Assembly: GCA_965240325.2 (NCBI GenBank)
Contig: OZ251229.1
Span: 744,001 to 808,000, forward strand
Source of the DNA: Rebecca billardiae RCC1528
Taxonomy: Eukaryota; Protista; Haptophyta
DNA length: 64,000 nucleotides
Direction of reading: 5' to 3'
The position numbers and the translations under genes are program-made. How positions within the stretch are numbered: position 1 is the first letter of the stretch; every line of letters starts with the position of its first letter. Shown here piece by piece: positions 9,808 to 35,818 of the stretch. The notes under the pieces were generated by a model. The model did no database searches. It was not told the origin of the DNA and was given only the letters and a program-made list of their open reading frames with translations.

Positions 9808-10012
9808 CGACACGATTCTAGCGCGATTTCTCGTTGGCTGCGCCGCAAGTTTTTTCCGCCTGTGCCGTGCGGCTTGACCGCTTGCCGTGGCTGATGAGCG
9901 GCCGCCCGGCCGCGCTGGCGAGGCACGCGCCTCGCGCGGCGAGCCGACACAGAAGCTCGTGCGCGGCCTGCCACTCATCAACACCGCGGCACGGCCGTCC
10001 GAGTGCAAAGGC

Positions 10013-11596
10013 ATGTTCCCCAACTCGCGCGCCTCTTCGTTCCACAAGTCGATCCCTGCGTGGGAGGCGATCCAGGCTGATGACCCCAGCCGCCTCAGCG
10101 ACATCACCTTCGACCCCAAGGCCACGCGCGGCGGCGAGCAGACGATGCTGCACTACGCGTGCGAGCACGACTCGCACAAGTGCGTCGCGTGGATCTGCTC
10201 CAAGCCGGGCGTGGACGTGAACGTGGAGGACGCTCAGCTGCGCACGCCACTTCTGATTGCGTGCGAGAACCTCGCGCTCAAGTCGCTCGACGTCCTGCTC
10301 GGCGTCGCGAGTGTCGACGTGACGGCGGCCAACAAGCAGGAGATGGGTGCGCTCCACCACGTGTGCGCATCTGATGAGGGGCTCGAGGCGGTGCGCAAGC
10401 TGCTCGACCGCGGGCTGGACGGCTCGGCGGCCTCGTCCGATGGGCTCACGCCGCTGCACGTCGCCGTGCTCCACGACGCCGTCGCCGTCGCGGCGCTGCT
10501 CATCGACCGCGGGCACGCCGGCTGGAAGACCAAGGCCGACGGCAGCGCTGACGCGAGCGGCGGCGCGCGGCGCGCGGCCACCACCGGCCGCGGCGCGGCG
10601 CCGCTGCTGCCGCTCGCGCTGGTGAAGAACGCGACGCGCTGCGCGGAGCTGCTCATCGACCGCGGCGCGCCCATCGACGCCGTCGACACGGAGGGCCGCA
10701 CCGCCCTCCACCTCGCCGTCAAGGAGGGCGCGCCGTGCCTGCCCGCACTGCTCCGGCGCGGGGAGATCCCGATTGACGCGGCCGACCGCGCGCGCCGCAC
10801 GGCGCTGCACTACGCCGTGGCGACGGGTTCGGTCGAGCGCGCGTCGCTGCTGCTGCAGCACGGCGCGGACATCGACGCCGCCGACGCGACGGGCATGAGC
10901 GCGCTGCACGTCGCGTGCTGCACGGGCGAGGCGGAGATCGCCCGGCTGCTGCTCGGGAAGGGCGCCACGGTCGAGGCGACCGACCGCGCGGGCAACACGC
11001 CGCTGCACTGGGCGTGCCAGCGCGGCTCGGCGGCGTGCGTCGAGCTGCTGCTCGAGGCGCAGGCCGACGCGGGCGCGGCGAATGTGGCGGGTCTAACCGC
11101 CGCGCAGCTCACCGAGGCCGCCGACGTCGCCGCCGCCTTCGCCAAGTTTGGGGTGGCTACCGCCACGAGGCCGGGCGCTGTCGCCGAGCCGACGACAGCG
11201 ACCGCCTCGGCTGCCGCGGCGCTCAAGCGCGGGCGCGCAGACGTGGCGTGCGACGCGCTCATCGACGCGTGGAACGCCGCCGACGCGGACGCGCTCGCCT
11301 CGCTCTTCGCCGAGGGCGGCTCGCTCGCCGGGCTCGACGCGCGCGTCGCGGTCGGCCGCGCCGCCGTGCGCTCCACTTGCGCGAGCGTGTTTGCCAACAA
11401 CTCGAGCCGCATCACGGTGCACGCGCGCCACACGTCCGCGGCCACGGGGACCGTGTGCGTCGAGGGCCGGCTTGCCGTCGACCGCGCCGCGGCCAAGCGC
11501 GGCGCCACCGCGCACGATTGCGCGCTCGTCGCGACCGTGGGCAGCGACGGGCTGCTCGTCAAGGTGACGCTGTACCGCACCGACCACCTTGCATGA
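10013..11596 (+). CDS. Ankyrin-repeat protein with C-terminal SnoaL/NTF2-like domain
   Basis: About 9 ankyrin repeats (GLTPLHVA, GRTALHLA, RRTALHYA, GMSALHVA, GNTPLHWA), then DALIDAWNAADADALASLFAEGG...GRAAVR...GLLVKVTLY. Confidence 0.88.
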   Translation: MFPNSRASSFHKSIPAWEAIQADDPSRLSDITFDPKATRGGEQTMLHYACEHDSHKCVAWICSKPGVDVNVEDAQLRTPLLIACENLALKSLDVLLGVASVDVTAANKQEMGALHHVCASDEGLEAVRKLLDRGLDGSAASSDGLTPLHVAVLHDAVAVAALLIDRGHAGWKTKADGSADASGGARRAATTGRGAAPLLPLALVKNATRCAELLIDRGAPIDAVDTEGRTALHLAVKEGAPCLPALLRRGEIPIDAADRARRTALHYAVATGSVERASLLLQHGADIDAADATGMSALHVACCTGEAEIARLLLGKGATVEATDRAGNTPLHWACQRGSAACVELLLEAQADAGAANVAGLTAAQLTEAADVAAAFAKFGVATATRPGAVAEPTTATASAAAALKRGRADVACDALIDAWNAADADALASLFAEGGSLAGLDARVAVGRAAVRSTCASVFANNSSRITVHARHTSAATGTVCVEGRLAVDRAAAKRGATAHDCALVATVGSDGLLVKVTLYRTDHLA

Positions 11597-12830: not shown

Positions 12831-15800
12831 TCAGACGCGCGCAGCCATGCCGTGCCGCACCATCCCGACGGCCGCGAGGTGGCCGACCTGCGCGAGATGG
12901 AAGACGGCGCGAGAGATCGGGTTGCCGTCGACGAGCAGCGTGATCGTCGCGCCGCACAGTCTGTTTGCCGCCTGCGCCGCCTCGAGGAGCGAGACAACTG
13001 CCGCGTCGCGCAGGCGGTTGCGGCACACGTTGAGCGTGTGCAGCTCGGGGCGCGCGTGCGCGAGCCCGCGCGCGAGCGCGCAGCCAGCGCGCGTGTCGAG
13101 CTCGCACTCTGCGAGGTGCAGCTGCTGCAGGGGGCAGCCGGGCAGCGCGAGGCACTCGCCGATCACCGCGCCGCCCTCGACGCCGAGGTGCACGTTGCGG
13201 TCGAGCCGCAGGTCGACGATGCCAGCGGCGGAGGGCGAGGAGGCGAGCTGGCGCATGAGCGTGCCCACGCCTGCCGCGCGCAGCATGTTGCCCTCGAGGT
13301 GGAGCGCGCGCACGCGCGGCGCGATCGACGCGCCCAGCAGCTCGGCGCACAGCACCTCCGCGTCGTCGCACGTCAGCTGCTTCTGCTCGAGTCGCACGAC
13401 GACGCGCGTGCCGGTGCGGCGCGTGGCGAGCGCCGTCTTCTGCGCGAGCACGGCGTACCGGGCGAATCGCGCGCGCACGTCGCGCTCCAGGGCGCAGATG
13501 TGCAGGCGGTCGGCCTCGACGGTGAGCGCGCCGCGCGAGGGCAGCTCGTCGGCGCAGAAGCGCGCCGCGTCGAGCTCCTCGCCCGTGAGCGCGCGGAAGA
13601 AGTCGCCGTCGATGTCGCCCGCGGAGCGGCGCATGCCGAGCGCGCGCCGGAGCGCGTGGATGGCCGAGCTCGCCCTCGCGGCGCCGCCCCTCCGCCGCCT
13701 GCCGCCGACGCCGCCGCGGCTGTCGCTCGAGGCGCCGCTGTCGCCGTAGAGTGCGACGGTGAGCTCCGCGTAATCGTCCGCGCCCTCGTCCTCCGCGTCG
13801 GCGGTGCCGCCCTCGTCCGCGCCCGGGACGGCGGCGCCCTCCTCGTGCTCGGCGCCGCCGGTGCCGTGCCCTTCCGGCTGCAGGCTCTGGAAGTCCTCGC
13901 CCGCCTTGGCGCCGTACGCAGGCCGGCCGTAGGCGTACACGTGCGCGCGCTCGCGAGACATCTCCATCAGGCAGAGGTACACGTAGAGCTCGCAGCGGCA
14001 CCACGCGCGCTCGCCATAGTGGAGCAGGTCGAGCGGGTGGCTCGCGTCGCGCAGCGAGAGCAGCTCGGCGGCGCGCGGCCGCACGGGGACGAGCAGGAAG
14101 TGCGCGCGCGCCGCGTAGGAGAGCAGCGACGTGATGCCGGCCGCCTGCCGCTCCGCGTCCTGCTGGTCGACGCAGGCGAAGTCGATCCAGATGGCGCACG
14201 AGGCGACGTCGATGCCGTGCGCGGCGGCGATGCGGCGCACGCCGTCGCTGACCAGCGCGTACTTGGTGTTCTGCCGGTCGTCCGGCGACTCGACGCGCCA
14301 CCAGCGGTGCGAGACGAAGATGACCACGTCGCGCGCCTCGTCGAGCGGCCGCGTGACGCCGTCCGCGTGCGAGGGGATGCGGCCGGCGTGCACCCACGCG
14401 TCGTAGGGCACGACGCACATGGGCCACTGCTCGCGCGCGATGATGGACGCGCGTGTCTCCGCCGAGAGCGCCGCCATGAGCTCCTCGTCCGTGTGCGCGC
14501 ACAGGCCGCCGCCGCCGCCCGCGTCGTCGTCCTCATCGCCCGCCTCGTGCACCGCGCCGAGCTCGAGCACGCCGTGCGACAGGTCGTCGTCGTCGTCGCC
14601 CTGGGAAGAGGTGCGGCGGCGGTGGTGGCCGCGGCGCGCCTTGGACTTCCTCGCGGCGGAGCTCGCCGCCTTCGCCGCCGCCGCGGCTGACGCGTCGCCC
14701 ACCGTGCCCAGCCTCGGCCCGCCGCCCAGGCTGCCGAGCAGCGCGGCCACCTCCTGCTGGATGTCGTCCTTTTTCAGGTAGAGCACGCCCGAGACCAGCC
14801 CCTGCAGGTGCGCCCAGCTGCCGGCGAACCAGTTGAGGTGGCCGCCGGTGAGGTAGTAGGGCACCTGCACCAGCCAGATCACGAAGAAGGGCGCCCACAT
14901 CGCGCCGATCACCACGAGCAGGCGCAGGAAGTACGTGTGCAGGCCTGACGCCGAGAGCCGCGTCACCGAGCCCGGCAGCGCGGCCGCGGCGGCGCCGGCG
15001 CGCGTGCTGCCGTTGCGCGTCTCCGGGCCGGTGCGCTCGAGCGCGCGCGTGCACCACGGCGCGCACATGAGCCAGGCGGGCGGCGGCACGCCGCTCTGCG
15101 CGGCGACGTTCAGCGCGTACGTGCGCGACGCCAGCAGCACGATCAGTGTGAGCGGGATGAAGAGCATCAGCTGCGCGGTGAACGCCCACAGGAAGGTGCT
15201 CGACGGCTTGTCGTACGGGACGGGCAGGCAGTTGAGGCCGCGCACGGCGTACGATTGCGCGGGGAAGCCGTCTCGGAGGCGGTACGCGAACGAGGGCACC
15301 AGCGAGAACGCGGCCACCAGCGCGTACGCCAACGAGAGCCGCGCCCACACGGCCGCGGGCCGCGTCGGCACGTACGTCTGCATCTCGTACGTGCAGCGCG
15401 AGAGGCGGCAGATCTCGGACGCGATCAGCACGTTGACCCACATCGAGCCGGCCGCGCCGAAGACGGTGTATGCCGACTGCAGGTCGCACATCCACGCGCC
15501 ATCGCCGTCCCAGTAGTCGCCGTGGTGCGCGTGCATCGCACACGTCCACACGCACGTGGTCGAGAAGATCACGTCCGGGATGGCCAGGCCGACGATGTAG
15601 TGGTTGAAGGGCGAGGCGCGAAGCCGGCGGCGGCCGAGCACAAGGACGATGATGGCGATGCCCGCCGAGGCGGAGACGAGGCTGACCAGCACCCACGCGC
15701 GCCAGTACGGCACGCGGATGTCGTCCGGCAGCGGCGTGCGGATGAGAAGCCACCGCGCCTCTTGTGCGTCCATGAACGGGTCCTCGCCGCGCGCGGCGCG

Positions 15801-15842
15801 CGCGATGGCGAAGCCATCGCCTGTCTCTGGCAGGTACGGCAT
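12831..15842 (-). CDS. 7TM GPCR-like receptor fused to a HET/TIR-like domain and RNI-type LRRs (1003 aa, one ORF)
   Basis: Seven hydrophobic helices with NHYIVGLAIPD, WMCDLQ, GLNCLP and HLQGLVSGVLY; then VIFVSHRW..PDD..IWIDFACVDQ..YGERAWCRCE; then LRRs (VRALHLEGNML, IVDLRLDRN, LQQLHLAEC, LHTLNVCRN). Confidence 0.85.
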   Translation of the reverse strand: MPYLPETGDGFAIARAARGEDPFMDAQEARWLLIRTPLPDDIRVPYWRAWVLVSLVSASAGIAIIVLVLGRRRLRASPFNHYIVGLAIPDVIFSTTCVWTCAMHAHHGDYWDGDGAWMCDLQSAYTVFGAAGSMWVNVLIASEICRLSRCTYEMQTYVPTRPAAVWARLSLAYALVAAFSLVPSFAYRLRDGFPAQSYAVRGLNCLPVPYDKPSSTFLWAFTAQLMLFIPLTLIVLLASRTYALNVAAQSGVPPPAWLMCAPWCTRALERTGPETRNGSTRAGAAAAALPGSVTRLSASGLHTYFLRLLVVIGAMWAPFFVIWLVQVPYYLTGGHLNWFAGSWAHLQGLVSGVLYLKKDDIQQEVAALLGSLGGGPRLGTVGDASAAAAAKAASSAARKSKARRGHHRRRTSSQGDDDDDLSHGVLELGAVHEAGDEDDDAGGGGGLCAHTDEELMAALSAETRASIIAREQWPMCVVPYDAWVHAGRIPSHADGVTRPLDEARDVVIFVSHRWWRVESPDDRQNTKYALVSDGVRRIAAAHGIDVASCAIWIDFACVDQQDAERQAAGITSLLSYAARAHFLLVPVRPRAAELLSLRDASHPLDLLHYGERAWCRCELYVYLCLMEMSRERAHVYAYGRPAYGAKAGEDFQSLQPEGHGTGGAEHEEGAAVPGADEGGTADAEDEGADDYAELTVALYGDSGASSDSRGGVGGRRRRGGAARASSAIHALRRALGMRRSAGDIDGDFFRALTGEELDAARFCADELPSRGALTVEADRLHICALERDVRARFARYAVLAQKTALATRRTGTRVVVRLEQKQLTCDDAEVLCAELLGASIAPRVRALHLEGNMLRAAGVGTLMRQLASSPSAAGIVDLRLDRNVHLGVEGGAVIGECLALPGCPLQQLHLAECELDTRAGCALARGLAHARPELHTLNVCRNRLRDAAVVSLLEAAQAANRLCGATITLLVDGNPISRAVFHLAQVGHLAAVGMVRHGMAARV

Positions 15843-16782
15843 CTTCTCGCCCGCGTCTCACTCCAGGCCGCGGGCCCGGCCCTCTGCCCACTCACGGTGA
15901 ACACGACCTTCTCAAGGGGCTCGCCCTTTAGCACGCCGCTCGTGGCTCTTTCACGAGTACCCAAGGGCGTTCCCGGGATCCTGCCACACGCTCCTGAAGA
16001 CCTGAAAAGCAAAGCGCGCCCCCGCTGCGGGGGCTTTGCCTTTTTTCGTATTCAAATGTACCCGCTTCGAATGGAGAAAGCTCGTTTCAATAGGAAGGTG
16101 GTTCAATTTGGCGAATGACCAATGCGGGGAACGCCCCTGGCGTGAGTTTGATCAAGAGTTCGTCCCTCCGCCGCCGCCGGGCGGGCGCCGGGCGGCCTTC
16201 GGGCTTCGGCGCACTCGGATTAATCAAAGCGGTCGGGTTACCAGTAGGTATAATACCCTCATTTCATTTATGGAAGCTTCCAGTTGCAGTATGACAGCAC
16301 CTGTTTGGGTCGTCGTGGAAACGAAAACGACGTCGACGGAACTTCCCTCACACAAGCACAGCGCGAAGGCGCCGCTCTCAGACCCGACGGGTAATTTTAT
16401 TATTGCCTTCGAAACGACATCAGATACCCCCTTCCAACCGTCTCATCTTCTGTGCATCCCGAATCTCACGATCGCCAGCGATCGCCACTCGCAATAATCT
16501 TCATCACTAATCAGGCGGCGGCGGGCGTTTGATGACTGGCTGTGAGCTGTGATGAGGAGGACCCTTTGACGAACCGAACCGCAATAAATAGGCGAGCGAA
16601 GACCGACTAAGGTTTATGAGTTACGACGACGACGGCTCGTGTGGTTGTTGTAAGAAAAATAAGGTCGTATCTTCATCGTAGAAAGGTCGAAAGGAAGAGA
16701 CAAGAGTCGCGACGAGCTTTTCTGCGACGCGGGCCCCCTCGCCAGGCGCTCACGAGCGAGCCCAGCGGGCGCTGAGCCCGCG

Positions 16783-19614
16783 ATGCTCGGGGGTCGTGCC
16801 GCGCCCACGAGTCTGAATGCCTCCGAGCCGCCCGTCTCGCTCGTGCTCATCACCGACCCTGGCCCGGACCCGGACGACGTGAAAGCGCTCATGGCGGCGG
16901 CCATGTTCCACCAGCAGCAGCGCGTGCAGCTGGCGGCGGTCATTTGCAATGGCGGCGGCGCGCCGCGTGAGCGCGCGCGACTGGCTGCGTGCGTGCTCCG
17001 GCACATGCACCTGGACGACGTCCCCGTGGGCATCGGCAGTGCCGGCACGCCTCGCACGGCGCTCGAGCACGAGTACCGGCTCGACGGCTACGGCGAGACC
17101 GTCGGCGCGCCGCTGCACGACGGGCTGACGCTCCTGCATGGCGTGCTCAGCTCGGCGGCGCCCTCGTCCATCGTGATGGTGTGCATCAGCAGCCTGCGCG
17201 ACGTCGCCGACGCGATGCAGGCGCACACCGCGCTCGTGATGAGCAAGGTCTCGCGCGTGATTGTGATGGGCGGCCTCGAGCGCGCGCACGGCGACACCGG
17301 CGGCGCTGGCGACGCTGATGCCGACGCGCCGCTCCCGCCCCCGCCCGGCGCGGCGGCGGCGCCGGTGCCGCCGCCGCCCTACGCGCCGTGGCGGCCGGAC
17401 AGCGCGCAGAACAACCAGTTCGACGTGAGCGCCGCCGAGTACGTGTACTCCTTCTGCTTTGAGCGAGGGATGCCGCTCACGGTCGTCGGCCGGCACGCGG
17501 TGCCGCTGCTGCCGATGCAGCTCGCGCGCTCGTTCGCCGAGCGCACGGACTCGGCGCTCATGCGCTACCTCGCCGACGCGCAGTTCCTCGGCCTCGAAGG
17601 GCTGTGGCGCCGGCTGTGCGCGGGCGAGCTCCCCGCGCGCTGCACGAAGCAGTGGTACTTCGAGACCTTCTGCGGCATCGGCGCCGAGCAGTTTGGCGCG
17701 CGCGGCTACGACGCGCTCGGCGCGGACGCGGCGATCAGCACGTTCCTCAACGGGTACGTGAAGCCGTACGACGTGGTCGCGCTGATGGCCGCGCTGCCCA
17801 CCTTCAGCGGCCTCGGCGGCGACTCCGCCGACTTCCTCTGGCGGCGCGTGCGACACCGGCTGCTGCTGGGTGCCGAGCACGCGCCCGACGTGCGCGAGGT
17901 GGCCGAGCTGCTGCGCGCCGCGTACCACCACGCGGTGGCGCTGGGCTCGCTGCAGTCGTCGGCGTCGCCGGACGGCGGCGGGCGCCCGCCGATCCTCTTC
18001 GGCCGGCTGCGCACCGGCGGCGCGGCGGAGCCGGCCGACGCGACGACGCTCGCCTCGTCCATCGCCGTGCTGAACGGCAGCGGCGCATATGGCAGCACGC
18101 AGCAGGCGGGCGCGCGCGCGCCGCGGCGGTCGGTCAAGCTGGTCGCGGCGGAGGAGGTGGGGACGAAGGTGCGCGAGGACTTCCTCGCCGCGGTGGACAA
18201 GGAGCGCACGCCGTCCGCGCAGGACCCGTCGCTCCCACGGCTGCCGCGCTCGCACCGCAACAGCGCAACGTCCAGCATCGGCGCGAGCGACGCTTCCGCC
18301 CAGCGGCCACCACTCCTCGGCGGCGCAGCCGCACCCGCCGCCGAGCACCGGCCCCCGGCTGGCCGCGGCGCTGCTGGCAGCTCGGAGCCGGCGCCCCCCG
18401 CGGCGCCCGCGCACGCGCCGGCCACACCGCCCGCCACGCGGTCGGCGACGCCCCTCGCGGCCTCGCGCGCGCCTCCCCCCGCGCTCCTCGAGCGCTCGCA
18501 CACGGGCCTGAGCACGCTGAGCGTGCACAGCGACCTGGCCAGCTGGAGCGCGATGCAGCAGCACCACCACACCGAGCCGCCCGGCCGCATGGCGGTGGCG
18601 CGGCTGCTCGACGGCGCGCTCTCGCAGGCGATGCGCGTGCACCGCTGGGTCGCGAGCGCGCTGCTGCTGCTCGGCGGCACGGGCTTCGCTGCCGTCGAGG
18701 CCGCGCGCGTGCTGCGCTGCCTGCAGATTGCTCTGCCCGGCTCGGCGGCCGTCGGCTGGCCGCGCGCCGCGTCGATCGCGCTCGACGACCTGGACGACAT
18801 GCTGCCCGTCGCGTCGGCGGTGTGCCTCGTGGTGGCGCTGCTCGGGCAGCTGCCTGTGCGCGAGCACATCTGGGCCGCGCACGCCGTCGCCATGCTGCTC
18901 GGCGCCTCGCTCGTCGCGCACACGCTGGTGAGCGCGTCGCAGCTGGGCGCGGACGGCAGCGGCGGCGGCGCGCACTGGTGGCACTGGGCGCTCAGCACGC
19001 TTGCCAACGCGGCCGTGGGCGTGTCGCTCGCGCGCGCGACCGCGCGGCACTCGCAGCCGGCGCCCGCGCACCTGGTGATCCGCGCGGTGTGGCGCTGCGC
19101 CGGCGCGTGGATGCTCGCCTCCGCCGCGCTCGCGCTCCTCGGCGCGTGGCTGCTCCCGCCGCGCGGCGCGGGCCCGCCGAGCGCGCCGTGGGCGCGCGCT
19201 GGCTCGCTGCTGCTGCTCGCGGGCCTCTCGCTCTACCCGCCGTTCCAGGCGAGCCTGTACGCGCAGCTGGTGCGCGCGCGGTGCATCTCGGGGCAGAGGC
19301 ACGTCGTGCTCGCGCCGCTGGTCGGCTTCGGCGCGGCGGAGGTCGCGGCGGGCGGCGGCAGCGCGCTGCTCTCGCGCGCCGAGCGCCGCTGCTTTGCGCT
19401 CAAGCTGAACGCAGCCGGGCGGCGCATCCTCGGCGCCGAGCTGATCGGCTCGGTCTCGGCGGTGGCCGAGGGCGGCAAACGCGGCGGCTCGTGCGAGAGC
19501 TCGCGCGAGGGCTTGCGCGGGGGCTCCCCGCGCGTCTCGAAGCGCAGCACGCCGCCGCCCTCAGTCGCCGGGCTGTCGCACGGTTGGCCCTCAACCGAGC
19601 GCGACCTGGAGATG

Positions 19615-19687
<73 letters not shown>

Positions 19688-21234
19688 TGGACGGTGGCAG
19701 CTCGTTCGGCTCGTCCACGAGCGCGGCGCTGCAGGCGGCGGCCGGGCTGCGGCCTGCGGTGAGCCCACTCGAGCCGGTCGCCGCATCCGAGCAGGGCGCG
19801 AGCCGCGCCAATCCCTCGCCGATGATGATCGACGCGGCTGACGAGCCGCCGCCGCGCGGCCACGGCCGGCAGCGCGAGCCGCGGGCGCAGCGCGGCGCGG
19901 CCGCGCGCGTTGCGGCCAGGGTGCTCAGCGCCCCGCGCCACTGGGCGCTGGCTGGGCGCGGCTCCGCCCGCCGGCCGCCGAGGCGCGGCCACGCGTCGGC
20001 GCACCGGCTGCAAGACGACGAGCGGGACGACAGCGGAGGCGGCAGCACCTCGAGCCGCGCGTCACCTTCCGAGGACGGGCGCGACAGCTTCAAGCGACAC
20101 AGCTTCACGCGAGCGGCGGCGTCACGCAAGGCGGGCTCGGAGGTCTCGATGCGCGAGCTGGCGCGCTCCATGCCGGCCTCGCCCGACGGGGTGCCGGTGG
20201 CGGGCTCACCGGCGCAGCACCGCTCTCCGCTCGGATCGATGCGCTTGGCGCCCTCGCGCCCGGCGCCCTCGCTCGACGGCGCGGGCGGGGCCTTGCAGTG
20301 GCTTCGTGACGAGGCCGTGCGGTGCCGGGCATGGCTCGGAGGCGCGCGCCACCGGTCGCCGCAGAGCAGCCCGCAGACGGGCAAGCGGCGCATGTCGACC
20401 AGCCTCTTCCGCCTCGCGCGGCTCGATCCGGACGGCCCGCTCTCCTGGTTCGGCCGCGCGGACGCGAGCGGCGTCGACTGGTTCGTGAGTCACTGCGTCG
20501 ACGACAGCGCCGAGGCTCGACTCGCCGCGCTCGACGCGTGGACGCGCTCCTCGCGCGAGACGCCGAGCGTGTTCATCGACTGCGCGTGCATGGCGCCCGA
20601 CCTCACGCCCGAGGACGCGCTCGCGCTGCGGCTCGTCGCGCTCGCGCGCGCGCAGCGGCTGCTCGTGCTCTGGGGGCCGCACTACGCCTCGTCGCTGCTC
20701 TGCGTGATGGACCTGGTCGCGTGGGTCGCACTCGGCCGCTCCCTCGACAGCGTGGAGGTGGTGGGCGCGATCGCGACGCTCGACGACGCGCACACGGCCG
20801 TCGCCGCTGTCGACGCCTTCCACGTCGCGTACGCGCGCCCGCCGACGAAGCGGGCGGGCGGCTCGGAGGAGGTGGCGCGCCGCCTCGCGCTCGCGTCCGA
20901 CCTCGCCGGCCCGCGCGCCATCAACCGCCTCGTCACCTCCTTCGCCAGCCCGATGCTCGACCTCGCCATCCGCCAGCGTGAGCTCGACGAGGGGCACGAC
21001 GACGGGGACTCGATCTCGTCCGACGATGACGGTTACTCGGGCAAGCACGGCAGCGTGGACCTGGAGCAGTCGCCGATGATCGGGGGGCACCGGAACGGGG
21101 GGAGCTTGCAGGTGATGCCGGCTCCCAGTCCCATCGGCGCACGCCGTTCCAGCTCGCAGTCATCGCCATCGGGGTTGAGGATCCACAGCAACATGATGCC
21201 CCAGTCTCAGGGCGATGATTCCGCCGGCCCGTGA
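16783..21234 (+). CDS. Nucleoside hydrolase-like domain + multipass membrane region + degenerate TIR-like domain (1483 aa, one ORF)
   Basis: LITDPGPDPDD, VPVGIG, VIVMGG, AQNNQFDVSAA and KPYD match the IU-NH fold. About 6 hydrophobic segments at 18640-19260. C-terminal DWFVSHC..VFIDCAC..RLLVLWGPHYASSLLCVMD. Confidence 0.8.
19614..19686. repeat. (GGC)n encoding a poly-Gly tract
   Basis: Direct reading; in frame within the 1483-aa ORF. Confidence 0.95.
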
Positions 21235-21474
21235 GACTCAGACTGACACTTATACTCACTGACACTCACTACTAGACCCTTCAGGAAAGGTTTAGTGGCC
21301 CCGGCCCTTCACGCAGTACGGGTTCCCACCGTCCTGACGAGTCGGCAGCGGCATACTATAGCCTAGTCGTACGACTAGTAGTATAGTAGTTAGCAGCATA
21401 CATCAGTACGTAGATAGTATACATCAGAGATCTATATCATCGATGATTGATACCGCCCGTGGATCATCGACGTT

Positions 21475-21580
21475 AGAGAGAGTCAGAGAGATCGAGATCT
21501 CGAGAGAGAGCAGAGGGCGGAGAGAGAGAGACGAGAGAGAAGCAGATGGATCGATGGATGGATGGATGGATCGATAGATA
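21475..21580. repeat. Degenerate (GA)n/(GATG)n simple repeat
   Basis: Direct reading. Confidence 0.8.
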
Positions 21581-21616
21581 TGATGGCCTGCTCGAGAGCG
21601 CGGTGTAAGTGGTCAA

Positions 21617-24598
21617 CTAGGGCGTGCTCAGCTGCGCGCCGCCGCCGCCGCCGCTGCATCGACTCGACACGGTCGTGTAGCCGCCGGCGCCGGCGCCGGC
21701 CGCAGGCGACGGTGAGTACGCGAGCCCAGCGGCCGACGCGGCGACGGGCGAGGTGCGCGAGGCGCGCGCGCCCGCGGGCGAAGCGGGCGCGCCGGCAGAG
21801 TCCACGCGTGAGCTCGTCGGCCGCGCCCGCCCCCCGCGTTGGCCGGGCGGGTAGAGCTGGTAGCCGCTGCCGCTCGTGTGCGCCTGCGTGTGCGTCCACG
21901 TGCGCGTGTGCTGCGCGCTCGCCTGCCGGCCGTGCTGCTCCCAGGAGGTGGTGCGGCGCGGCGAGGTGTAGCTGCGCGCGGCGTGGCGCGCGGTCGAGGC
22001 GTGCGTGCGCGGCGGCGTGGTCTCGGACCACAGCGCGTGCGCGCGCACGGTCTCGGGCGAGTGCGGCCACGGCGGCGAGCCGGCGCGCTGCCGGTGGCGC
22101 GGCGACAGCGGGTTGCGCGGAGAGTTGGGCGGCGCGGCGAGCGAGATCATCACGGGGAACGGGCTGCCGGCGATGTGCTCCGAGTGGAGGGTGACCTCGA
22201 TGTGGTACTTGCCCGTGACGGGCGTGGTGTACTCCACGCCGTACGAGCCGTCGCCGCGGTCCTCGAACGTGTGCACGTTGCCGTAGTGCCCGTGCGAGCG
22301 CGGCACGACGCTCACCGCAAACGGGTGGCCTCCGTACGTGAGCCGATTGCCGAGCGTGTCGCGCGCGACGATGGTGAAGGCACCGACGCCGCCGAGGAGG
22401 CCGACGCCCTCGAGCCCGGCGCCGTGCGCGGCGGAGTGGCGCGCCGAGGCGGGGCCCGGCGCGACCACGAACTCGAACGGCGAGCCCACGATGTCCCCGC
22501 CCGCCGCGGGCATCGAGACGCGCACCGAGTGCGCGCCGAGGGCGCGCGGGCAGAAGCGCAGCTCGTACCGACCATCGCCCCAGTCGTGCAGCAGCACGGC
22601 CTCGGAGGAGGCGGAGCACGCCGCGGCGAACTCGTCGCCGCCGCGGCGCGTGGGGTTGCCGTGCGCGTCGCGCGCGATCACGAGGAACGCCACCCACTCG
22701 TTCGCGAGCAGCGTCTCGCCCGCGAGCCGCGTGCCGTCCTCCGCGGCCGTGCGCCGAGCGCTCGCGCGGCCAGGCTCGACGAGCACGCGCGCGGGCGCGC
22801 CGCCGACAACGTCGCCGTCGAGCTGCGCGTGGATGGACCAGACGCCGGCGCGCTCGCAGCTCCACGTGAGCGCGTACGTCCCGTCGTCGCGGTCGACCGC
22901 CTCGACGCTCGCCACCTCGCCCCCGCCGCCGTCGGCGGGCACGGCGACCAGCTCGGCGCGCGCGCCGCCGCGCTCGCACCGGTTGCCGCCCTTGTCGCAC
23001 GCTTCGATCACCCACGTCTGTGGCTCGCCGGCGACGGCGCGCCACGCGGCGTGCTGCAGCAGCGACTTGGCGGCGCTGGGCGGCCCCGCGCGCACGTGCA
23101 CGCGGAACGGCGAGCCCTGCACCGCGCGCCCGCCCAGCGACACGTGCACGAGCGCCGTGCCGGCCGCGCTCGGCACGACCTGGCAGTGGATGCGCTCCGC
23201 CTCCGCGCGCGCGTACACGCGCGCAGACGGGTCGGGCGCGCCGTGCTCGTCGGTGACGTGCACCTCGAGCTCGCCGACGACGTCCTCCGCGGGCTTCCAG
23301 TTGCCCTCCGCGTCGGCCGGCGCGATGTACAGCGTGTTCATCTCCCCCGCCACGCACTCGTCCAGCGCGCCGCCGTACGCGCCCGACGCCTCGGGCTCGA
23401 GCCGGCCTGGCGTGACGCTCAGCTCAAACGGAGAGCCACGGATGGCGTGCGCGCCGCCCGCGAGGATGTGCACGTCGTACACGCCGGCGCGGCGCGGGGT
23501 GAAGCCGACGCGGTACGTGCCGTCGCCATCGTCGTACACTGCCGCGAGCACCTCGTCGCCCTCCTCCGCCGCCTCCCCCTCCGAGCGCCGCCGCACGACG
23601 CGCGCGACAAAGTCGTCGCCGCCGCGCTCGCGCTGGTTGCCGTTCGCGTCGCGCGCCTTCACGGCGAACGAGACGTGCTCGCCGGCGGCGGGGCGGAGGC
23701 TGGCGAGCTCCTCGGCGGTGCTGGCGAAGGGCAGCGTCGTGCTCGACACGACGAGGCACAGCATCGGCTCGCCGCCCACCAGCGTCCCGTCGAGCGTCAC
23801 CGACGCGTCGTACGCGCCCGCGCGGTCGGCCGTGTAGCGCACGCTGTACGCGCCGTTGCCGTGGTCAAGCACGTCGCACTCGACGCGCGCGTCGGCGCGG
23901 CCGCGCGCGTGCGCGTCGGAGAGCGTGTCCACGCGCGCGTCGAAGCGCACCGCCACGCGGTCCCCGCCGCGCTCCACGCGGTTCCCGAAGCGGTCGCGCG
24001 CGAGGAGAGTGAACGAGGACGGCAGGCCGGCGACCGCGGACGACACGTGTCGCCCGTGCGGCCCGCCGTCGTCCGAGCCGACGAGCTCGGAGGCGGCGGC
24101 GACGGGCGCGCCCGCGCGCACGCGCAGCGCGAACGGGCTCCCCGAGATGTGCCCGCCCTCCACCGTGATCGCCAGCAGGTACTCGCCCGCGTTGTACAGC
24201 GGCCCAAAGCTGAGCGGCACGCGCGCCGCCTGCCACTCCTCAAACAGCACCTCCGCCTCGCTGACGGGGAGCGCGGCGGGGCCCGCGTCGCGGGGCAGGA
24301 CCTGCGCGTTCGCGTACGTGCGCACGTTCCGGTAGTTCGCGGGGAGCGCGGCGTGCGCGTGCAGCAGCACCGAGCCGGTCTCGCCCGCGTCGACCGCGCT
24401 CAGGTTGGGGCCGGACGCATGGCACCGCTTCGCGCGGCCCAGCCAGCGCCATGGCTCGTCGCCGCCACGCTGGCGGTGGTGGACGGCGTCGAGGAGCGTA
24501 CGCTCTGGCGAGGCCGGCCTAGGCGAGCCGCCCGCCGTGCGCCCGCCCGAGGTGGGGCTGCGAGGCCGCGACGGGCTCGGCGACGCGAAGGAGAGCAT
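21617..24598 (-). CDS. Filamin/ABP280 Ig-repeat protein (about 7 repeats, no CH actin-binding domain seen)
   Basis: Repeated ARDxxGN...GGD, DxGDGTY and HIxGSPF motifs. ATG at 24598 (MLSFASP). Confidence 0.9.
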   Translation of the reverse strand: MLSFASPSPSRPRSPTSGGRTAGGSPRPASPERTLLDAVHHRQRGGDEPWRWLGRAKRCHASGPNLSAVDAGETGSVLLHAHAALPANYRNVRTYANAQVLPRDAGPAALPVSEAEVLFEEWQAARVPLSFGPLYNAGEYLLAITVEGGHISGSPFALRVRAGAPVAAASELVGSDDGGPHGRHVSSAVAGLPSSFTLLARDRFGNRVERGGDRVAVRFDARVDTLSDAHARGRADARVECDVLDHGNGAYSVRYTADRAGAYDASVTLDGTLVGGEPMLCLVVSSTTLPFASTAEELASLRPAAGEHVSFAVKARDANGNQRERGGDDFVARVVRRRSEGEAAEEGDEVLAAVYDDGDGTYRVGFTPRRAGVYDVHILAGGAHAIRGSPFELSVTPGRLEPEASGAYGGALDECVAGEMNTLYIAPADAEGNWKPAEDVVGELEVHVTDEHGAPDPSARVYARAEAERIHCQVVPSAAGTALVHVSLGGRAVQGSPFRVHVRAGPPSAAKSLLQHAAWRAVAGEPQTWVIEACDKGGNRCERGGARAELVAVPADGGGGEVASVEAVDRDDGTYALTWSCERAGVWSIHAQLDGDVVGGAPARVLVEPGRASARRTAAEDGTRLAGETLLANEWVAFLVIARDAHGNPTRRGGDEFAAACSASSEAVLLHDWGDGRYELRFCPRALGAHSVRVSMPAAGGDIVGSPFEFVVAPGPASARHSAAHGAGLEGVGLLGGVGAFTIVARDTLGNRLTYGGHPFAVSVVPRSHGHYGNVHTFEDRGDGSYGVEYTTPVTGKYHIEVTLHSEHIAGSPFPVMISLAAPPNSPRNPLSPRHRQRAGSPPWPHSPETVRAHALWSETTPPRTHASTARHAARSYTSPRRTTSWEQHGRQASAQHTRTWTHTQAHTSGSGYQLYPPGQRGGRARPTSSRVDSAGAPASPAGARASRTSPVAASAAGLAYSPSPAAGAGAGGYTTVSSRCSGGGGGAQLSTP

Positions 24599-24895
24599 CG
24601 ATGAGATACCACGCGACGAAGTGGCCGTCAAGTGGCGCGAAGTTTTGCGCGGGCACCGGACCGGCGAAGTCTGTTTCATTCCGGTAGAAATCGACAAATC
24701 CGGCCGTGCTTTTGATGCCGGAACAAACTGAAAACGATGAAGGACTACCGGCCAGGACGCGAATAATGAAATTGAAAGGGGGCTGATGACGCGCGAAATT
24801 CTATCCGCGGAGTCGCGGCGGACAAGGTTCCATAACAGTGTCGCCGGTGACCGGTGTCGATTCCATCGTCGCCGGTGCCACCGATTCATCATCAG

Positions 24896-32320: not shown

Positions 32321-34193
32321 ATGGCGAGCGCGACGGTGATGCCCATGGACGAAGCGGCGCGTGTCGCAGCGCAGCTCCACACGGTCAAGCACGAGCTCAA
32401 GCCGTGGCAGCGCCGTCTCCTCACGATCATCGACCGATGGGGCGACTCGGCGCGCGCGCTGTGGGAGACGGTCATCTGCGCGTCGATCATGCCCCTCCTC
32501 ATCTACGTGCCGATGAGCGCGGCGTTCGACGTGGACTCGTCGTCAGTCGCGCCCGAGGGCTACGTGGGGCTGTTCTTCTTCATCCACGCCATCAACGCCA
32601 TCGACCTCATCGTCTCGCTCTCGCTGCCCGCGCCCGACATCAACGCCAAGCCGCTACGGCCAGAGAAGCTGCCGACGGGGCTGACGTTCGAGGCGGTGGT
32701 GGGCGTCACGCTGTCCGAGCACATGCGCGCGTATTCCTCATCCTCCTCCGCCTTCCTCGACGTGCCCGGCGTGCTCGCCCCGCTCATCGCGGACGTGGTG
32801 ATCGCGTCGGGCTCGCGCGCGATGCCCGTGTACGCGACCAACCTGCTCAAGTTGCTCGTGCTGCTGCGCATGCGGCGGATGATGAGCGCGCACGAGCTGC
32901 TCACGAAGATCACGGAGTTCTGGGACCAGCAGGACTACTTCGCCAAGTTCTGCACCGTGATCATCGTGTACGTCTACTTCTCGCACCTAGCGGGCTGCGC
33001 GTGGATCGCGCTGTACAACCACTTTGACGACCCGCCGCCGCCCGGCCACTTCCTGCGCGCGTGCGTGGTGGGCGTCGAGCCGGGCGCGGCGGAGGACGGC
33101 GCCGGGCCGGTCGAGTCGTGCTACCTCCGCTCGTTCTACCTCTCCATCATGATCTTCACCCTCTTCGGCTTCCCGCCCGAGTTCTCGCCCGCCACGACCG
33201 CGGAGATGGTGTTCACGTGCTCGCTGCTCACCGTGGGTGCGATGCTCAACTCGACGATCTTCGGCACGATCGCGATGTACATCCGGCAGGCGAGCCGCGA
33301 CCGCGACCGGCGGCAGCACGTGCTCGACGACGTGAACGACTTCATCGCCGACCACGAGGGCAAGCTGCCGCCCGAGCTCAAGGCGGCGCTGCGGTACCAC
33401 ACGTACTTTCTGCACAAGCACAGGCACATGGCATCCAACGCGATGATTGAGCTGATGCCGCCGTCGGTGCAGCAGGACGTGGCGTACGCGCTGCACAGGC
33501 GGCAGCTGGAGGACGTGCCGCACTTCTCCTCGCTCCCGCCCATCTCGATCGCGCAGCTCGCGCGCAACCTGCAGACGCAGCACTTCATGCCCGGCGACAC
33601 GGTCGTGACGGAGGGCGAGACGCACCTCAACCCGTCGATGTACTTTGTCTACTTGGGGCGGCTGGCGACGATCAAGCACTTCTCGCGCACGTGGTCGAGG
33701 ACCAAGTCGATGCGCACGAACGTGAGCGAGGCGGCGACCCACGCCGCGCGCACGCTCTCGCGCAACATCTCGCGCACCTCCAGCCGGCCCGCCGACTCGC
33801 CGCCCGGCTCGTCGGCGCCGAGCCGAGTGAACTCGTCCGCCCTCGGCCTCCGCACAAACTCGCGGCGCGCGTACAGCTGCGCGGACGAGGTGGGGACGGA
33901 GGGCAGCGAGAGCGCGCCGGGGAGCATGCGGGGCAGCCGCGCGGCCAGCCGCGCCAGCAGCCGCCCCTCCTCGCCCGACGTGATGCGCGCCTCGCGCGGA
34001 GCTGGCGGCGGCGGCGGCGGCAACTTCGCTCGCACCTTCAGCAGCCCGGCCGCGGGGCCGGCGGCCGCGAGCGCCGGGGCGTGCGGCGGCGTGCGGCCGG
34101 CGAGCCCTGTGCGCGGCGCGCGCCCTGTGAGCCCTGTGCGCACTGCGCGCATCTCCAGCCCACGCGGCGGCTCTCGAGCCGCCCCGTGCGACG

Positions 34194-34224
<31 letters not shown>

Positions 34225-35099
34225 GCGGCGCGCGGGCGGCTTCCCCGTGTCCGCGCGAGCGTCCGAGGCCGCGAGGCCGCTGCCCGGGGAGTCGCCGAGC
34301 GCGGCCGCGCGCCGCGCGTGGCTCAAGTCGGCGCACGCGGTGAAGGCGGTGCGCTGGATGGCTGAGCGGCGCAGCAGTGCGATGACGGAGGTGGGCACGG
34401 ACCTGGGGCTCGATGACCCGCCGCCGCGCCCGCCGCGCGCCGCGCACCCAGCGGAGCGCGCCGAGCGCGCGGAGGGCGAGCGCGCGCGCGTGGCCGCGCC
34501 CGGCTCGCCCGCGGGCGGGGGTCGCGCGGGCAGCGCGCTCAAGTCGAGCCCGATGCTCACGGCGCAGAAGCTACGGCTCAAGGCGGGGCGGCGCGCTCGG
34601 CAGGCGCGCGGCGACGCGTCGCACCACCACGACGCCGACGGCTCCGCCACGCCGCCCCGGCGGCGCGGCTCGCGGCTCGCCGGCCAGACACACAACGACG
34701 TGCGCTCGTCCTCAACCAACATCCTGAGCATTCTCAAGGAGGGTGACCACTTCGGCGAGATCTCGCTGCTGCTCGAGGTGCCGCGCACAGCGACGGTGCA
34801 GGCGATCCTGCGCACCATCCTGCTCACGCTCACGCGCGAGCACCTCCTCTTCGTGCTGCGCGAGATGCCCGAGGTTCTGCGCGGGCTGGTCGACAGCGCT
34901 CGCGACCGGCTGCATCGCTCCAAGGAGACGCGCGCGCTGCGCAAGAGCTACTCGCGCTTCGGCGGGCTGGGGATGATGGGCGCGCGGGAGGCGCGGCCGT
35001 CGGGCGGCTCGGTGACGCCGCCGTTCGGCCGCCTCTCGCGCGGCGTCTCGCGCGAAGACATCGGGATCGCAGCGGCCGCGCTCGCGGGCGCGATGGCGA

Positions 35100-35137
<38 letters not shown>

Positions 35138-35818
35138 TCGGAGCCAACGGGCGTGACGTCGCAGGAGCTGCGGTACAGCTTGGCCGGGGCCGCGGCCGCG
35201 CTGGGCACGAGCAGCGGGCAGCTGCCGACCATGCACGCCGAGGACACGCCGCCCGAGACGCCCGAGGAGGACGCGCACGCCAACGTCCTCGCCTCCGAGC
35301 TGCAGCGCATCCGCGACGCGTACGACGACGCGACAGTCGGCACGCCGCCGATGCGGCCGGGCGCGCGCCAGTTTCTCCTCGACGGCCTCCCGCCGCTCGG
35401 CGCGCGCCCCGGCGCGGAGCTGAGCGGGCGGCCGCCGCCCGCCGCGCTGACGCGAGCCCAAACGAGCGGGCTCTTCGCCGAGCGCTACCGCGGGCTCTCG
35501 ACCGTCGGCTCCGAGGCGAGCATCGAGGCGCCGCCCGCCGCTGCGCCGAGCGGCGGCGCGCGAGCCGCGGAGGCGGAGCCGGCGCGTCGCGAGGTGCCGA
35601 GGCCCGGCGACGGGCTCAGCGCGCAAGAGGCCGCCGACGCGGCGACGGCGGCCGCGGCGGCGGCAGCGCAGCAGCCGCGCACCCACGAGCACAACATGAC
35701 GATGATGATGGAGGGCGTGATGAGCCAGCTACGCCGGATGCACCTCGAGCTCGCTGAGGTGCGCGGGGAGGTGGCCGGGGTGCGCAATTCGCAGCGCCGA
35801 CAGTCGATCCACAACTGA
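32321..35818 (+). CDS. 6TM cation channel of the CNBD (KCNH/CNG/HCN) superfamily
   Basis: S1-S6 with S4 LLKLLVLLRMRRM, S5 SHLAGCAW, pore SFYLSIMIFTLFGFPPEFSPATTAE and a C-linker. CNBD halves FMPGDTVVTEGE..SMYFVYLG and GDHFGEISLL..PRTATVQA. Confidence 0.9.

Follow-up and report, generated by a model that had tools for sequence, protein, structure and literature searches.

A conserved head-to-head gene pair in pavlovophyte haptophytes couples a predicted seven-helix receptor with a HET/TIR-like domain to a XopQ-like hydrolase with a TIR-fold domain

Introduction

In the immunity of bacteria, plants and animals, TIR domains produce nucleotide signals; in enzymatic TIRs, the WCxxEL helix holds the catalytic glutamate that is required for NADase activity. 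The bacterial effector XopQ is reported to cleave one such TIR product, 2'cADPR, to ADP-ribose (ADPR) with high specificity and to block type VI Thoeris; proteins of the XopQ subfamily showed no activity towards common nucleosides and have an enlarged pocket, and eukaryotic homologues are absent from the discussion in that study (preprint 10.64898/2026.06.15.732069). HopQ1-like proteins (HLPs) have been described in fungi, mosses and algae, including the haptophyte Emiliania, with TIR fusions going unmentioned (PMC6019455). Likewise, the described GPCR-bigrams, in which a G-protein-coupled receptor (GPCR) is fused directly to a presumed enzyme, carry PIPK, INPP, AC, PDE or kinase domains, none of them TIR or HET (PMC6033456). 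Here, we analysed a stretch of 64,000 nucleotides from the haptophyte Rebecca billardiae RCC1528 (GenBank assembly GCA_965240325.2, contig OZ251229.1, positions 744,001 to 808,000 of the forward strand; referred to as the window, with position 1 as its first letter), in which two divergent genes, A and B, encode predicted membrane proteins with one TIR-like domain each, joined in A to a seven-transmembrane (7TM) receptor and in B to a XopQ-like hydrolase.

The conserved pairing of these two genes is what is new here. Together, A and B may constitute an anciently linked, probably co-regulated membrane signalling module of pavlovophyte haptophytes that employs TIR-type nucleotide chemistry. A literature search on haptophyte TIR, HET, GPCR and nucleoside hydrolase combinations found nothing relevant.

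Results

The gene pair and its conservation in Diacronema lutheri

Gene A (12831–15842, minus strand) consists of a single open reading frame (ORF) of 1003 aa, with a 7TM receptor, a HET/TIR-like domain and leucine-rich repeats (LRRs) of the ribonuclease-inhibitor (RNI) type. Gene B (16783–21234, plus strand), likewise a single ORF, encodes 1483 aa comprising a XopQ-like hydrolase, about six transmembrane (TM) helices and a TIR-fold domain. The intervening spacer (15843–16782; 940 bp by ORF coordinates), presumed to be a shared promoter region, has a GC content of 57% compared to ~70% in the two genes, the local base composition of the window being ~60–80% GC. This arrangement agrees to the base with a first-pass annotation made from the sequence and its ORFs, which had read the locus as two single-ORF genes facing away from each other across a 940-bp gap. 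A profile search of the window revealed no ORFs other than A and B to carry a TIR-like domain.

The best homologue of A is a Diacronema lutheri protein, P0002, to which A aligns collinearly from end to end at 42% identity. The P0002 gene lies on a chromosome-scale contig (L001), head-to-head with a gene for a 1363-aa IU_nuc_hydro protein (P0010) and separated from it by a spacer of 158 bp. Gene B is collinear with this neighbour in its hydrolase, TM and TIR parts, and also with P0009, a B orthologue from a third organism (contig L009). Between B and the D. lutheri neighbour, the hydrolases share 47% identity (E 2e-87) and the TIR domains 36% (E 1e-25), with a weak match of the membrane block. 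In a tree of 66 TIR-like domains, B, P0010 and P0009 formed a clade (Shimodaira–Hasegawa-like approximate likelihood-ratio test, SH-aLRT, 95); the hydrolase-domain tree was a star that did not separate B's orthologue. Linkage of the orthologues, set beforehand as a check on the proposed pairing, was thereby borne out, the A and B orthologues being head-to-head in D. lutheri.

The A/B pair is the sole adjacency kept between the window and the D. lutheri locus. The remaining seven genes of the 23-kb D. lutheri locus are all without a match in the 64-kb window (0/7), the pair being flanked by ankyrin–SnoaL and filamin-repeat genes in the window and by Dus and an unknown 413-aa gene in D. lutheri. 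Downstream of B, in particular, each genome has a different gene, namely the filamin-repeat gene (window), Dus (D. lutheri) or a BRCT gene (L009). Divergence is also evident from the proteins, as A and B are only ~40–47% identical to their D. lutheri orthologues. Comparison of 15843–16782 with the 158-bp D. lutheri spacer revealed no common sequence or motif. As controls we considered the loci of paralogues (L002, L006, L007, L008 and L009). No second TIR-like or A-like gene was found within 8–10 kb of the D. lutheri paralogues of A (P0003) and of B (P0159), or of the two Pavlovales sp. CCMP2436 paralogues P0037 and P0162. The L009 contig likewise shows no second TIR-like gene, but it ends ~415 bp upstream of the B orthologue. 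The contigs of three further homologues (P0019, P0024 and P0005) are ~3 kb long, transcript-like and devoid of genomic context.

Adjacency alone is not evidence; the case lies in the same orthologous pair staying head-to-head while its surroundings changed, as seen in one genome comparison. Against it stands the explanation that A and B are neutral neighbours, that is, independent members of two large haptophyte families (7TM–HET/TIR and hydrolase–6TM–TIR), each acting alone, whose adjacency arose once in a pavlovophyte ancestor and was kept since a short bidirectional promoter is rarely broken. In favour of such a history are the XopQ-like hydrolase paralogues of D. lutheri, at least 14 in number, the lack of an A-like neighbour beside paralogues, the D. 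lutheri spacer of 158 bp, and the dependence of the conservation on a single genome comparison. However, all other adjacencies around the pair differ between the genomes, on both sides, and the spacer in the window measures 940 bp and is hence no small target. In addition, a Glu-to-Asp exchange accompanied by Trp-to-Leu/Val in the TIR domain (see below) is confined to the B orthologues, which fits a TIR domain that leaves catalysis to a partner. Neutral neighbourhood is the chief competing explanation, and we hold it to be just slightly less likely than the module favoured below.

The TIR-like domains of B and A

The C-terminal domain of B (20458–20982, plus strand; residues 1226–1400) contains the blocks FVSHC, FIDCACMAPD and SLLCVMD. 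In B itself, this domain had no Pfam match. An exhaustive HMMER search with the last 206 residues yielded 370 representative homologues, and canonical members of the resulting family (alignment A1) read DAFxSHSWxD ... WLDKACIDQ ... RLWCVMEL. Among 51 family members, Pfam recognised TIR_2 in 23 (best E 2.5e-6) and HET in 14, which suggests that the family sits between the two. The best sequence-profile matches were the TIRs of TLR15 and SIGIRR; for the former (E 1.5e-5), DAFxSHS aligned on beta-A and WCxxEL on the TIR WCxxEL (WCQYEL). An AlphaFold2 model from the A1 alignment (predicted local distance difference test, pLDDT, 92) returned exclusively TIRs among the top 50 PDB matches in Foldseek (50/50; RUN1, SNC1, RPP1, RPS4/RRS1, Roq1, MyD88 and SARM1). 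In VIA-align, the closest structures were AbTir (Z 11.7; 3.1 Å over 120 residues) and the SPARTA TIR (Z 11.3), followed by RPP1, MyD88, SARM1 and many more TIRs at Z 9–11. The predicted structure of B's C-terminal domain is thus a clear TIR fold.

In the third block, SLLCVMD (residues 1304–1310), an aspartate occupies the column of the TIR-type glutamate (Asp1310; codon 20710–20712, plus strand, checked) and a leucine the Trp position. In the family profile alignment, the glutamate was retained in 133/176 homologues, comprising 107/133 without and 26/43 with a hydrolase. Aspartate at this column was restricted to B, P0009, P0010 and one of the 133 non-hydrolase homologues among the 176 aligned sequences, and the combined L/V-C-x-x-D motif was unique to the clade of B, P0009 and P0010. 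The altered motif thus reflects an ancient condition preserved within the B orthologue group rather than decay. Between the orthologues, B's TIR domain is 36–43% identical and the linkers are not alignable, which points to constraint on the domain.

A Logan contig is 100% identical to the 3′ end of B (20520–21664). The first 29 bases of this contig (L011:1–29) match nothing in the window and open with a stop codon; they could stem from chimeric assembly or from an alternative exon further upstream, which, if real, would give rise to a form without the first TIR strand.

The corresponding domain of A (13893–14345, minus strand; residues ~500–650) is marked by the blocks SHRWW, WIDFACVDQ and ERAWCRCE. 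Its RAWCRCE motif (residues 612–618) ends on Glu618, which lies at the TIR catalytic glutamate position of WCxxE (codon 13989–13991, minus strand, checked) and is kept in A, P0002 and P0003; an insertion of 18 residues precedes the WCxxE helix (alignment A2). By profile–profile comparison, the TIR-like domains of A and B are homologous: hhalign aligned the A profile (A2) to the B-family profile (A1) with 97.6% probability (E 3.2e-12, 94 columns), and a B-only profile recovered A in the window at E 3.6e-6. The two domains belong to different subfamilies, with 27% identity over the 94 profile columns, and a recent tandem duplication as the origin of the pair was therefore rejected. The first-pass annotation had set an active TIR in A against a pseudo-TIR in B. 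The two domains are indeed homologous, with the glutamate in A only; as the column is filled by Asp and not by nothing, 'pseudo-TIR' is best used for B as a provisional label.

Pfam HET (PF06985) matched A's domain below the cut-off (E 0.056; 14.2 bits, cut-off 22.5). An AlphaFold2 model (pLDDT 87.8) resembled predicted fungal HET clusters in ESM-Atlas with template-modelling (TM) scores of 0.53–0.56, and scores reached up to 0.70 across HET and haptophyte clusters, the latter featuring Ank, H-NOX and lectin domains. These comparisons are consistent with A's domain being a HET-like member of the TIR superfamily that carries the Glu (E618). Among its seven close homologues is one fungal protein, P0007 of Cercophora samala (690 aa, with TPR), which matches A's domain at E 1.3e-6 and contains WxDxxCxDQ and RAWC blocks, with no Pfam HET annotation. 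This protein appears to tie the algal HET-like subfamily to fungal NLR-like (nucleotide-binding LRR receptor-like) architectures.

The receptor and repeat domains of A

The N-terminal part of A (14763–15695, minus strand; residues ~50–360) is a predicted 7TM receptor of the rhodopsin family, as inferred from a Pfam 7tm_1 match over residues 62–327 (E 2.7e-12; 47.2 bits, cut-off 30.5) and from weak PDB matches to adrenergic, cannabinoid and chemokine receptors. At the opposite end, RNI-type LRRs (12873–13400, minus strand; residues ~815–990) were detected by phmmer against the PDB, with ribonuclease inhibitor 4per at E 2.9e-13 and NLRP LRRs lower in the list; the D. lutheri orthologue P0002 contains LRR_6. 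The Pfam 7tm_1 and RNI LRR matches and the intact motif at 612–618 support the order 7TM, HET/TIR-like, LRR with RAWCRCE preserved, which the first-pass annotation had given for A. Window positions 15988–12785 are matched without a break, at 100% identity, by a 3204-bp Logan contig that exceeds the coding sequence of A by 146 and 46 bases. Being unbroken and transcript-like, it supports an intron-less model of A, and it looks like a candidate transcript with its 5′ start at 15988.

The hydrolase and membrane block of B

Gene B encodes, in this order, a hydrolase, a disordered linker, ~6 helices, a linker with a run of 24 glycines (19615–19686, plus strand, from the translation) and the C-terminal TIR-fold domain. 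This matches the earlier description of B as nucleoside hydrolase, TM and TIR-like domain with an altered motif, given the Pfam IU_nuc_hydro match, the helices and SLLCVMD at 1304–1310. The glycine run, within a disordered linker, drew false PDB hits from engineered proteins that contain Gly-Ser linkers.

The hydrolase domain (16813–17982, plus strand; residues ~11–400) was recognised by Pfam IU_nuc_hydro (E 4.8e-10; 40 bits, cut-off 34.2) and by PDB matches, the best of which were XopQ (4kl0/4p5f, E 7.6e-19) and 7jlu_B, with residues 11–340 aligned. Judged by these matches, the domain belongs to the XopQ/HopQ1 subfamily. Its non-canonical aspartate motif DPGPDPDD (D25, D29, D31 and D32; 16855–16878, plus strand) lies opposite DPNKDPDD of XopQ and is kept in 9/12 paralogues checked. 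In the D. lutheri B orthologue, a ~270-nt intron separates DPGPDP from DD (L001:9036–9842), the window gene being uninterrupted there. Asp330, in the motif KPYD (codon 17770–17772, plus strand, checked), is opposite LYDP of XopQ, and KPYD is kept in B's paralogues. In XopQ, D120N, alone or combined with D399N, is reported to abolish activity, and D105 and D384 of HopQ1 share the 279-residue spacing of the XopQ pair (preprint 10.64898/2026.06.15.732069). As D330 aligns opposite the XopQ Asp 279 residues beyond the D120 equivalent, spacing and alignment suggest D29 and D330 of B to be the counterparts of D120 and D399, respectively. The first-pass annotation had supposed that B's hydrolase senses or degrades a product of the TIR domain in A; with a XopQ-subfamily hydrolase and the reported 2'cADPR cleavage, degradation becomes a concrete idea backed by the literature.

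These features also bear on the possibility that the TIR/HET-like domains are assembly modules only, comparable to TLR–MyD88, by which A and B co-assemble at the membrane, with the hydrolase acting on ordinary nucleosides or an unrelated riboside. Indeed, adaptor function alone is common among TIR domains, the best profile matches are to the TIRs of TLR15 and SIGIRR, HET activity is unproven and B lacks the Glu. Yet the presence of Glu in 133/176 family members suggests a catalytic role, the XopQ subfamily, with its enlarged pocket, showed no activity towards common nucleosides, and the repeated joining of this very hydrolase with TIR-like domains speaks for a connection through chemistry. A pure scaffold is thus quite unlikely.

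The block of ~6 hydrophobic helices (18640–19260, plus strand; residues ~620–826), delineated by a hydropathy scan and by reading the sequence, is 25–29% identical to P0010 and P0009. It matched no family in Pfam, including any channel or transporter family, and an Atlas feature search with it returned solely unnamed haptophyte clusters with scores below 0.9. As the helix count is even and a signal peptide is absent, the hydrolase and the TIR domain are probably both cytoplasmic, which would place the two ends of B on the same side of the membrane as the tail of A.

In TRPM2, the NUDT9-homology domain binds ADP-ribose. By the same logic, B might be a receiver. Its XopQ-like domain would bind a nucleotide from A or from further TIR proteins and would thereby gate a channel or transporter formed by the six helices, in which case hydrolysis would be a timer only. 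Such a role would be in line with the permanent attachment of the hydrolase to a conserved six-helix block, seen in 43 homologues, with the conservation of this block between orthologues, and with the crystallisation of XopQ with bound ADPR (4p5f). We nevertheless deem it improbable, as the block matches no channel or transporter family and has no pore signature, and as both catalytic aspartates, which are often lost when an enzyme evolves into a sensor domain, are kept.

Other genes in the window

The downstream neighbour of A (9887–11596, plus strand) is a 569-aa ORF with ankyrin repeats fused to a SnoaL-like domain of the polyketide-cyclase fold. That of B (21617–24892, minus strand) is a 1091-aa ORF in which a GEX2 N-terminal Ig-like domain (Pfam E 5e-21) occurs along with six filamin repeats, a combination that resembles the architecture of the plant gamete-attachment protein GEX2. 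Further along, a 1165-aa ORF (32321–35818, plus strand) harbours a cyclic-nucleotide-binding domain (Pfam E 6.8e-10) with no other domain recognised.

Discussion

We tentatively favour, at somewhat less than even confidence, a reading of A and B as co-regulated parts of one module, with A making a nucleotide signal and B removing or processing it. In such a module, the 7TM core of A would sense a ligand outside the cell, and ligand binding would lead to assembly of the HET/TIR domains of A, which would turn NAD+ into an ADP-ribose-derived signal. B, produced from the divergent promoter common with A and residing in the same membrane, would dock through its non-catalytic TIR domain by TIR–TIR contact, for which RRS1 with RPS4 provides a precedent. 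Its XopQ-like domain would then hydrolyse or process the signal at the membrane, so that B would set signal lifetime and protect against uncontrolled NAD+ loss or cell death. Of this chain, the analysis shows which domains are present, that the catalytic aspartates are kept, that the TIR-like domains are homologous and that the linkage is conserved; the membrane topology, all enzymatic activities, the TIR–TIR contact and co-expression are steps that we infer. The absence of a second TIR-like gene in the flanks of the paralogues at the five control loci speaks for the module. Its most specific form, a self-contained eukaryotic circuit in which a GPCR-gated TIR/HET domain makes a messenger of the cyclic ADP-ribose (cADPR) type and a linked, TIR-docked XopQ-type hydrolase ends the signal, appears unlikely at present.

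Several points weigh against the maker-and-breaker arrangement. HET is a remote relative of TIR whose activity is unknown (PMC10197012), and no activity is known for HET or the algal family. The model of A's domain found its best PDB matches at Z 5–6, with nucleoside deoxyribosyltransferases and the TIRs of MyD88, SARM1, SpbK and ThsB, which is within the range of chance arrangements. Of the TIR-like character that the first-pass annotation had ascribed to both proteins, that of B was upheld by structure comparison and that of A by profile homology, the matches of A to solved structures being weak. The substrate specificity of XopQ is not transferable to the hydrolase of B, a domain aligned only in part by BLASTP/phmmer. 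A divergent spacer of 158 bp is a small target for rearrangement, such that linkage may persist neutrally. Moreover, most other hydrolase–6TM–TIR paralogues keep their own Glu (26/43) and are without an A-like neighbour, so that the family does not generally need a partner. Finally, the pair is seen in two genomes, the L009 contig being uninformative on this point because of where it ends.

If the self-contained circuit were real, effectors of the XopQ/HopQ1 family would be mimics of an 'off' enzyme that eukaryotes themselves encode, HET-type domains would have enzymatic activity, and receptor-driven sensing in marine phytoplankton would be a role of TIR nucleotide signalling besides intracellular immunity. 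The pair offers three testable leads. One is a maker/breaker circuit within a single organism, and another is a possible origin, or mirror, of the XopQ effectors in evolution. The third is a tractable way into the biochemistry of HET-type domains and into the large TIR/HET receptor repertoires of haptophytes. These receptors may bear on cell death and viral bloom control.

With respect to known systems, the A/B pair, supported by one comparison genome, joins two known kinds, TIR signalling and a XopQ-type hydrolase. On the side of A, fungal HET domains (PF06985) share the three HET-like blocks SHRW, WIDxxCxDQ and RAWCxxE, but A falls below the curated Pfam cut-off, carries the 18-residue insertion and occurs in an alga; and whereas fungal HET domains are fused to NACHT, WD or TPR, the HET-like domain of A is fused to a GPCR and LRRs. 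In having a 7TM receptor fused directly to a presumed enzyme domain, A resembles the GPCR-bigrams of oomycetes and protists. SARM1 exemplifies a TIR-type domain whose activity is under an attached regulatory region, as we propose for A; unlike A, it is soluble or mitochondrial and regulated by ARM-SAM.

As a pair, the locus is reminiscent of RPS4/RRS1, which is likewise divergent, has a TIR-fold domain in both partners and lacks the catalytic Glu in one of them; the TIR–TIR heterodimer of these proteins (PDB 4c6t) was among the fold matches of B. A Pfam scan of A and B, read up to E 1, detected neither NB-ARC nor NACHT, so the two are not an NLR pair of the plant kind that the first-pass annotation had cited; what they have in common with such pairs is the head-to-head layout, the LRR and the TIR-like domains. 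RPS4/RRS1, by contrast, has NB-ARC, and A and B are predicted to be integral membrane proteins. Where the RPS4/RRS1 partner bears a decoy domain, B bears a hydrolase, and sensing would presumably occur through the 7TM receptor of A.

For the hydrolase, XopQ and HopQ1 share with B the nucleoside-hydrolase fold, the DxxxDxDD calcium/aspartate motif and the C-terminal Asp, but are secreted bacterial effectors, B being an endogenous algal membrane protein by prediction. Compared to these effectors and to the HLPs, B stands out by the fusion of its hydrolase, via ~6 helices, to a TIR fold, an architecture absent from the XopQ preprint and from PMC6019455. The proposed logic of A and B resembles that of type VI Thoeris and phage anti-Thoeris enzymes, where a TIR-made cADPR-isomer signal can be destroyed by a dedicated enzyme. 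In the algal pair, however, maker and breaker would be neighbours in one organism, serving self-regulation and not attack.

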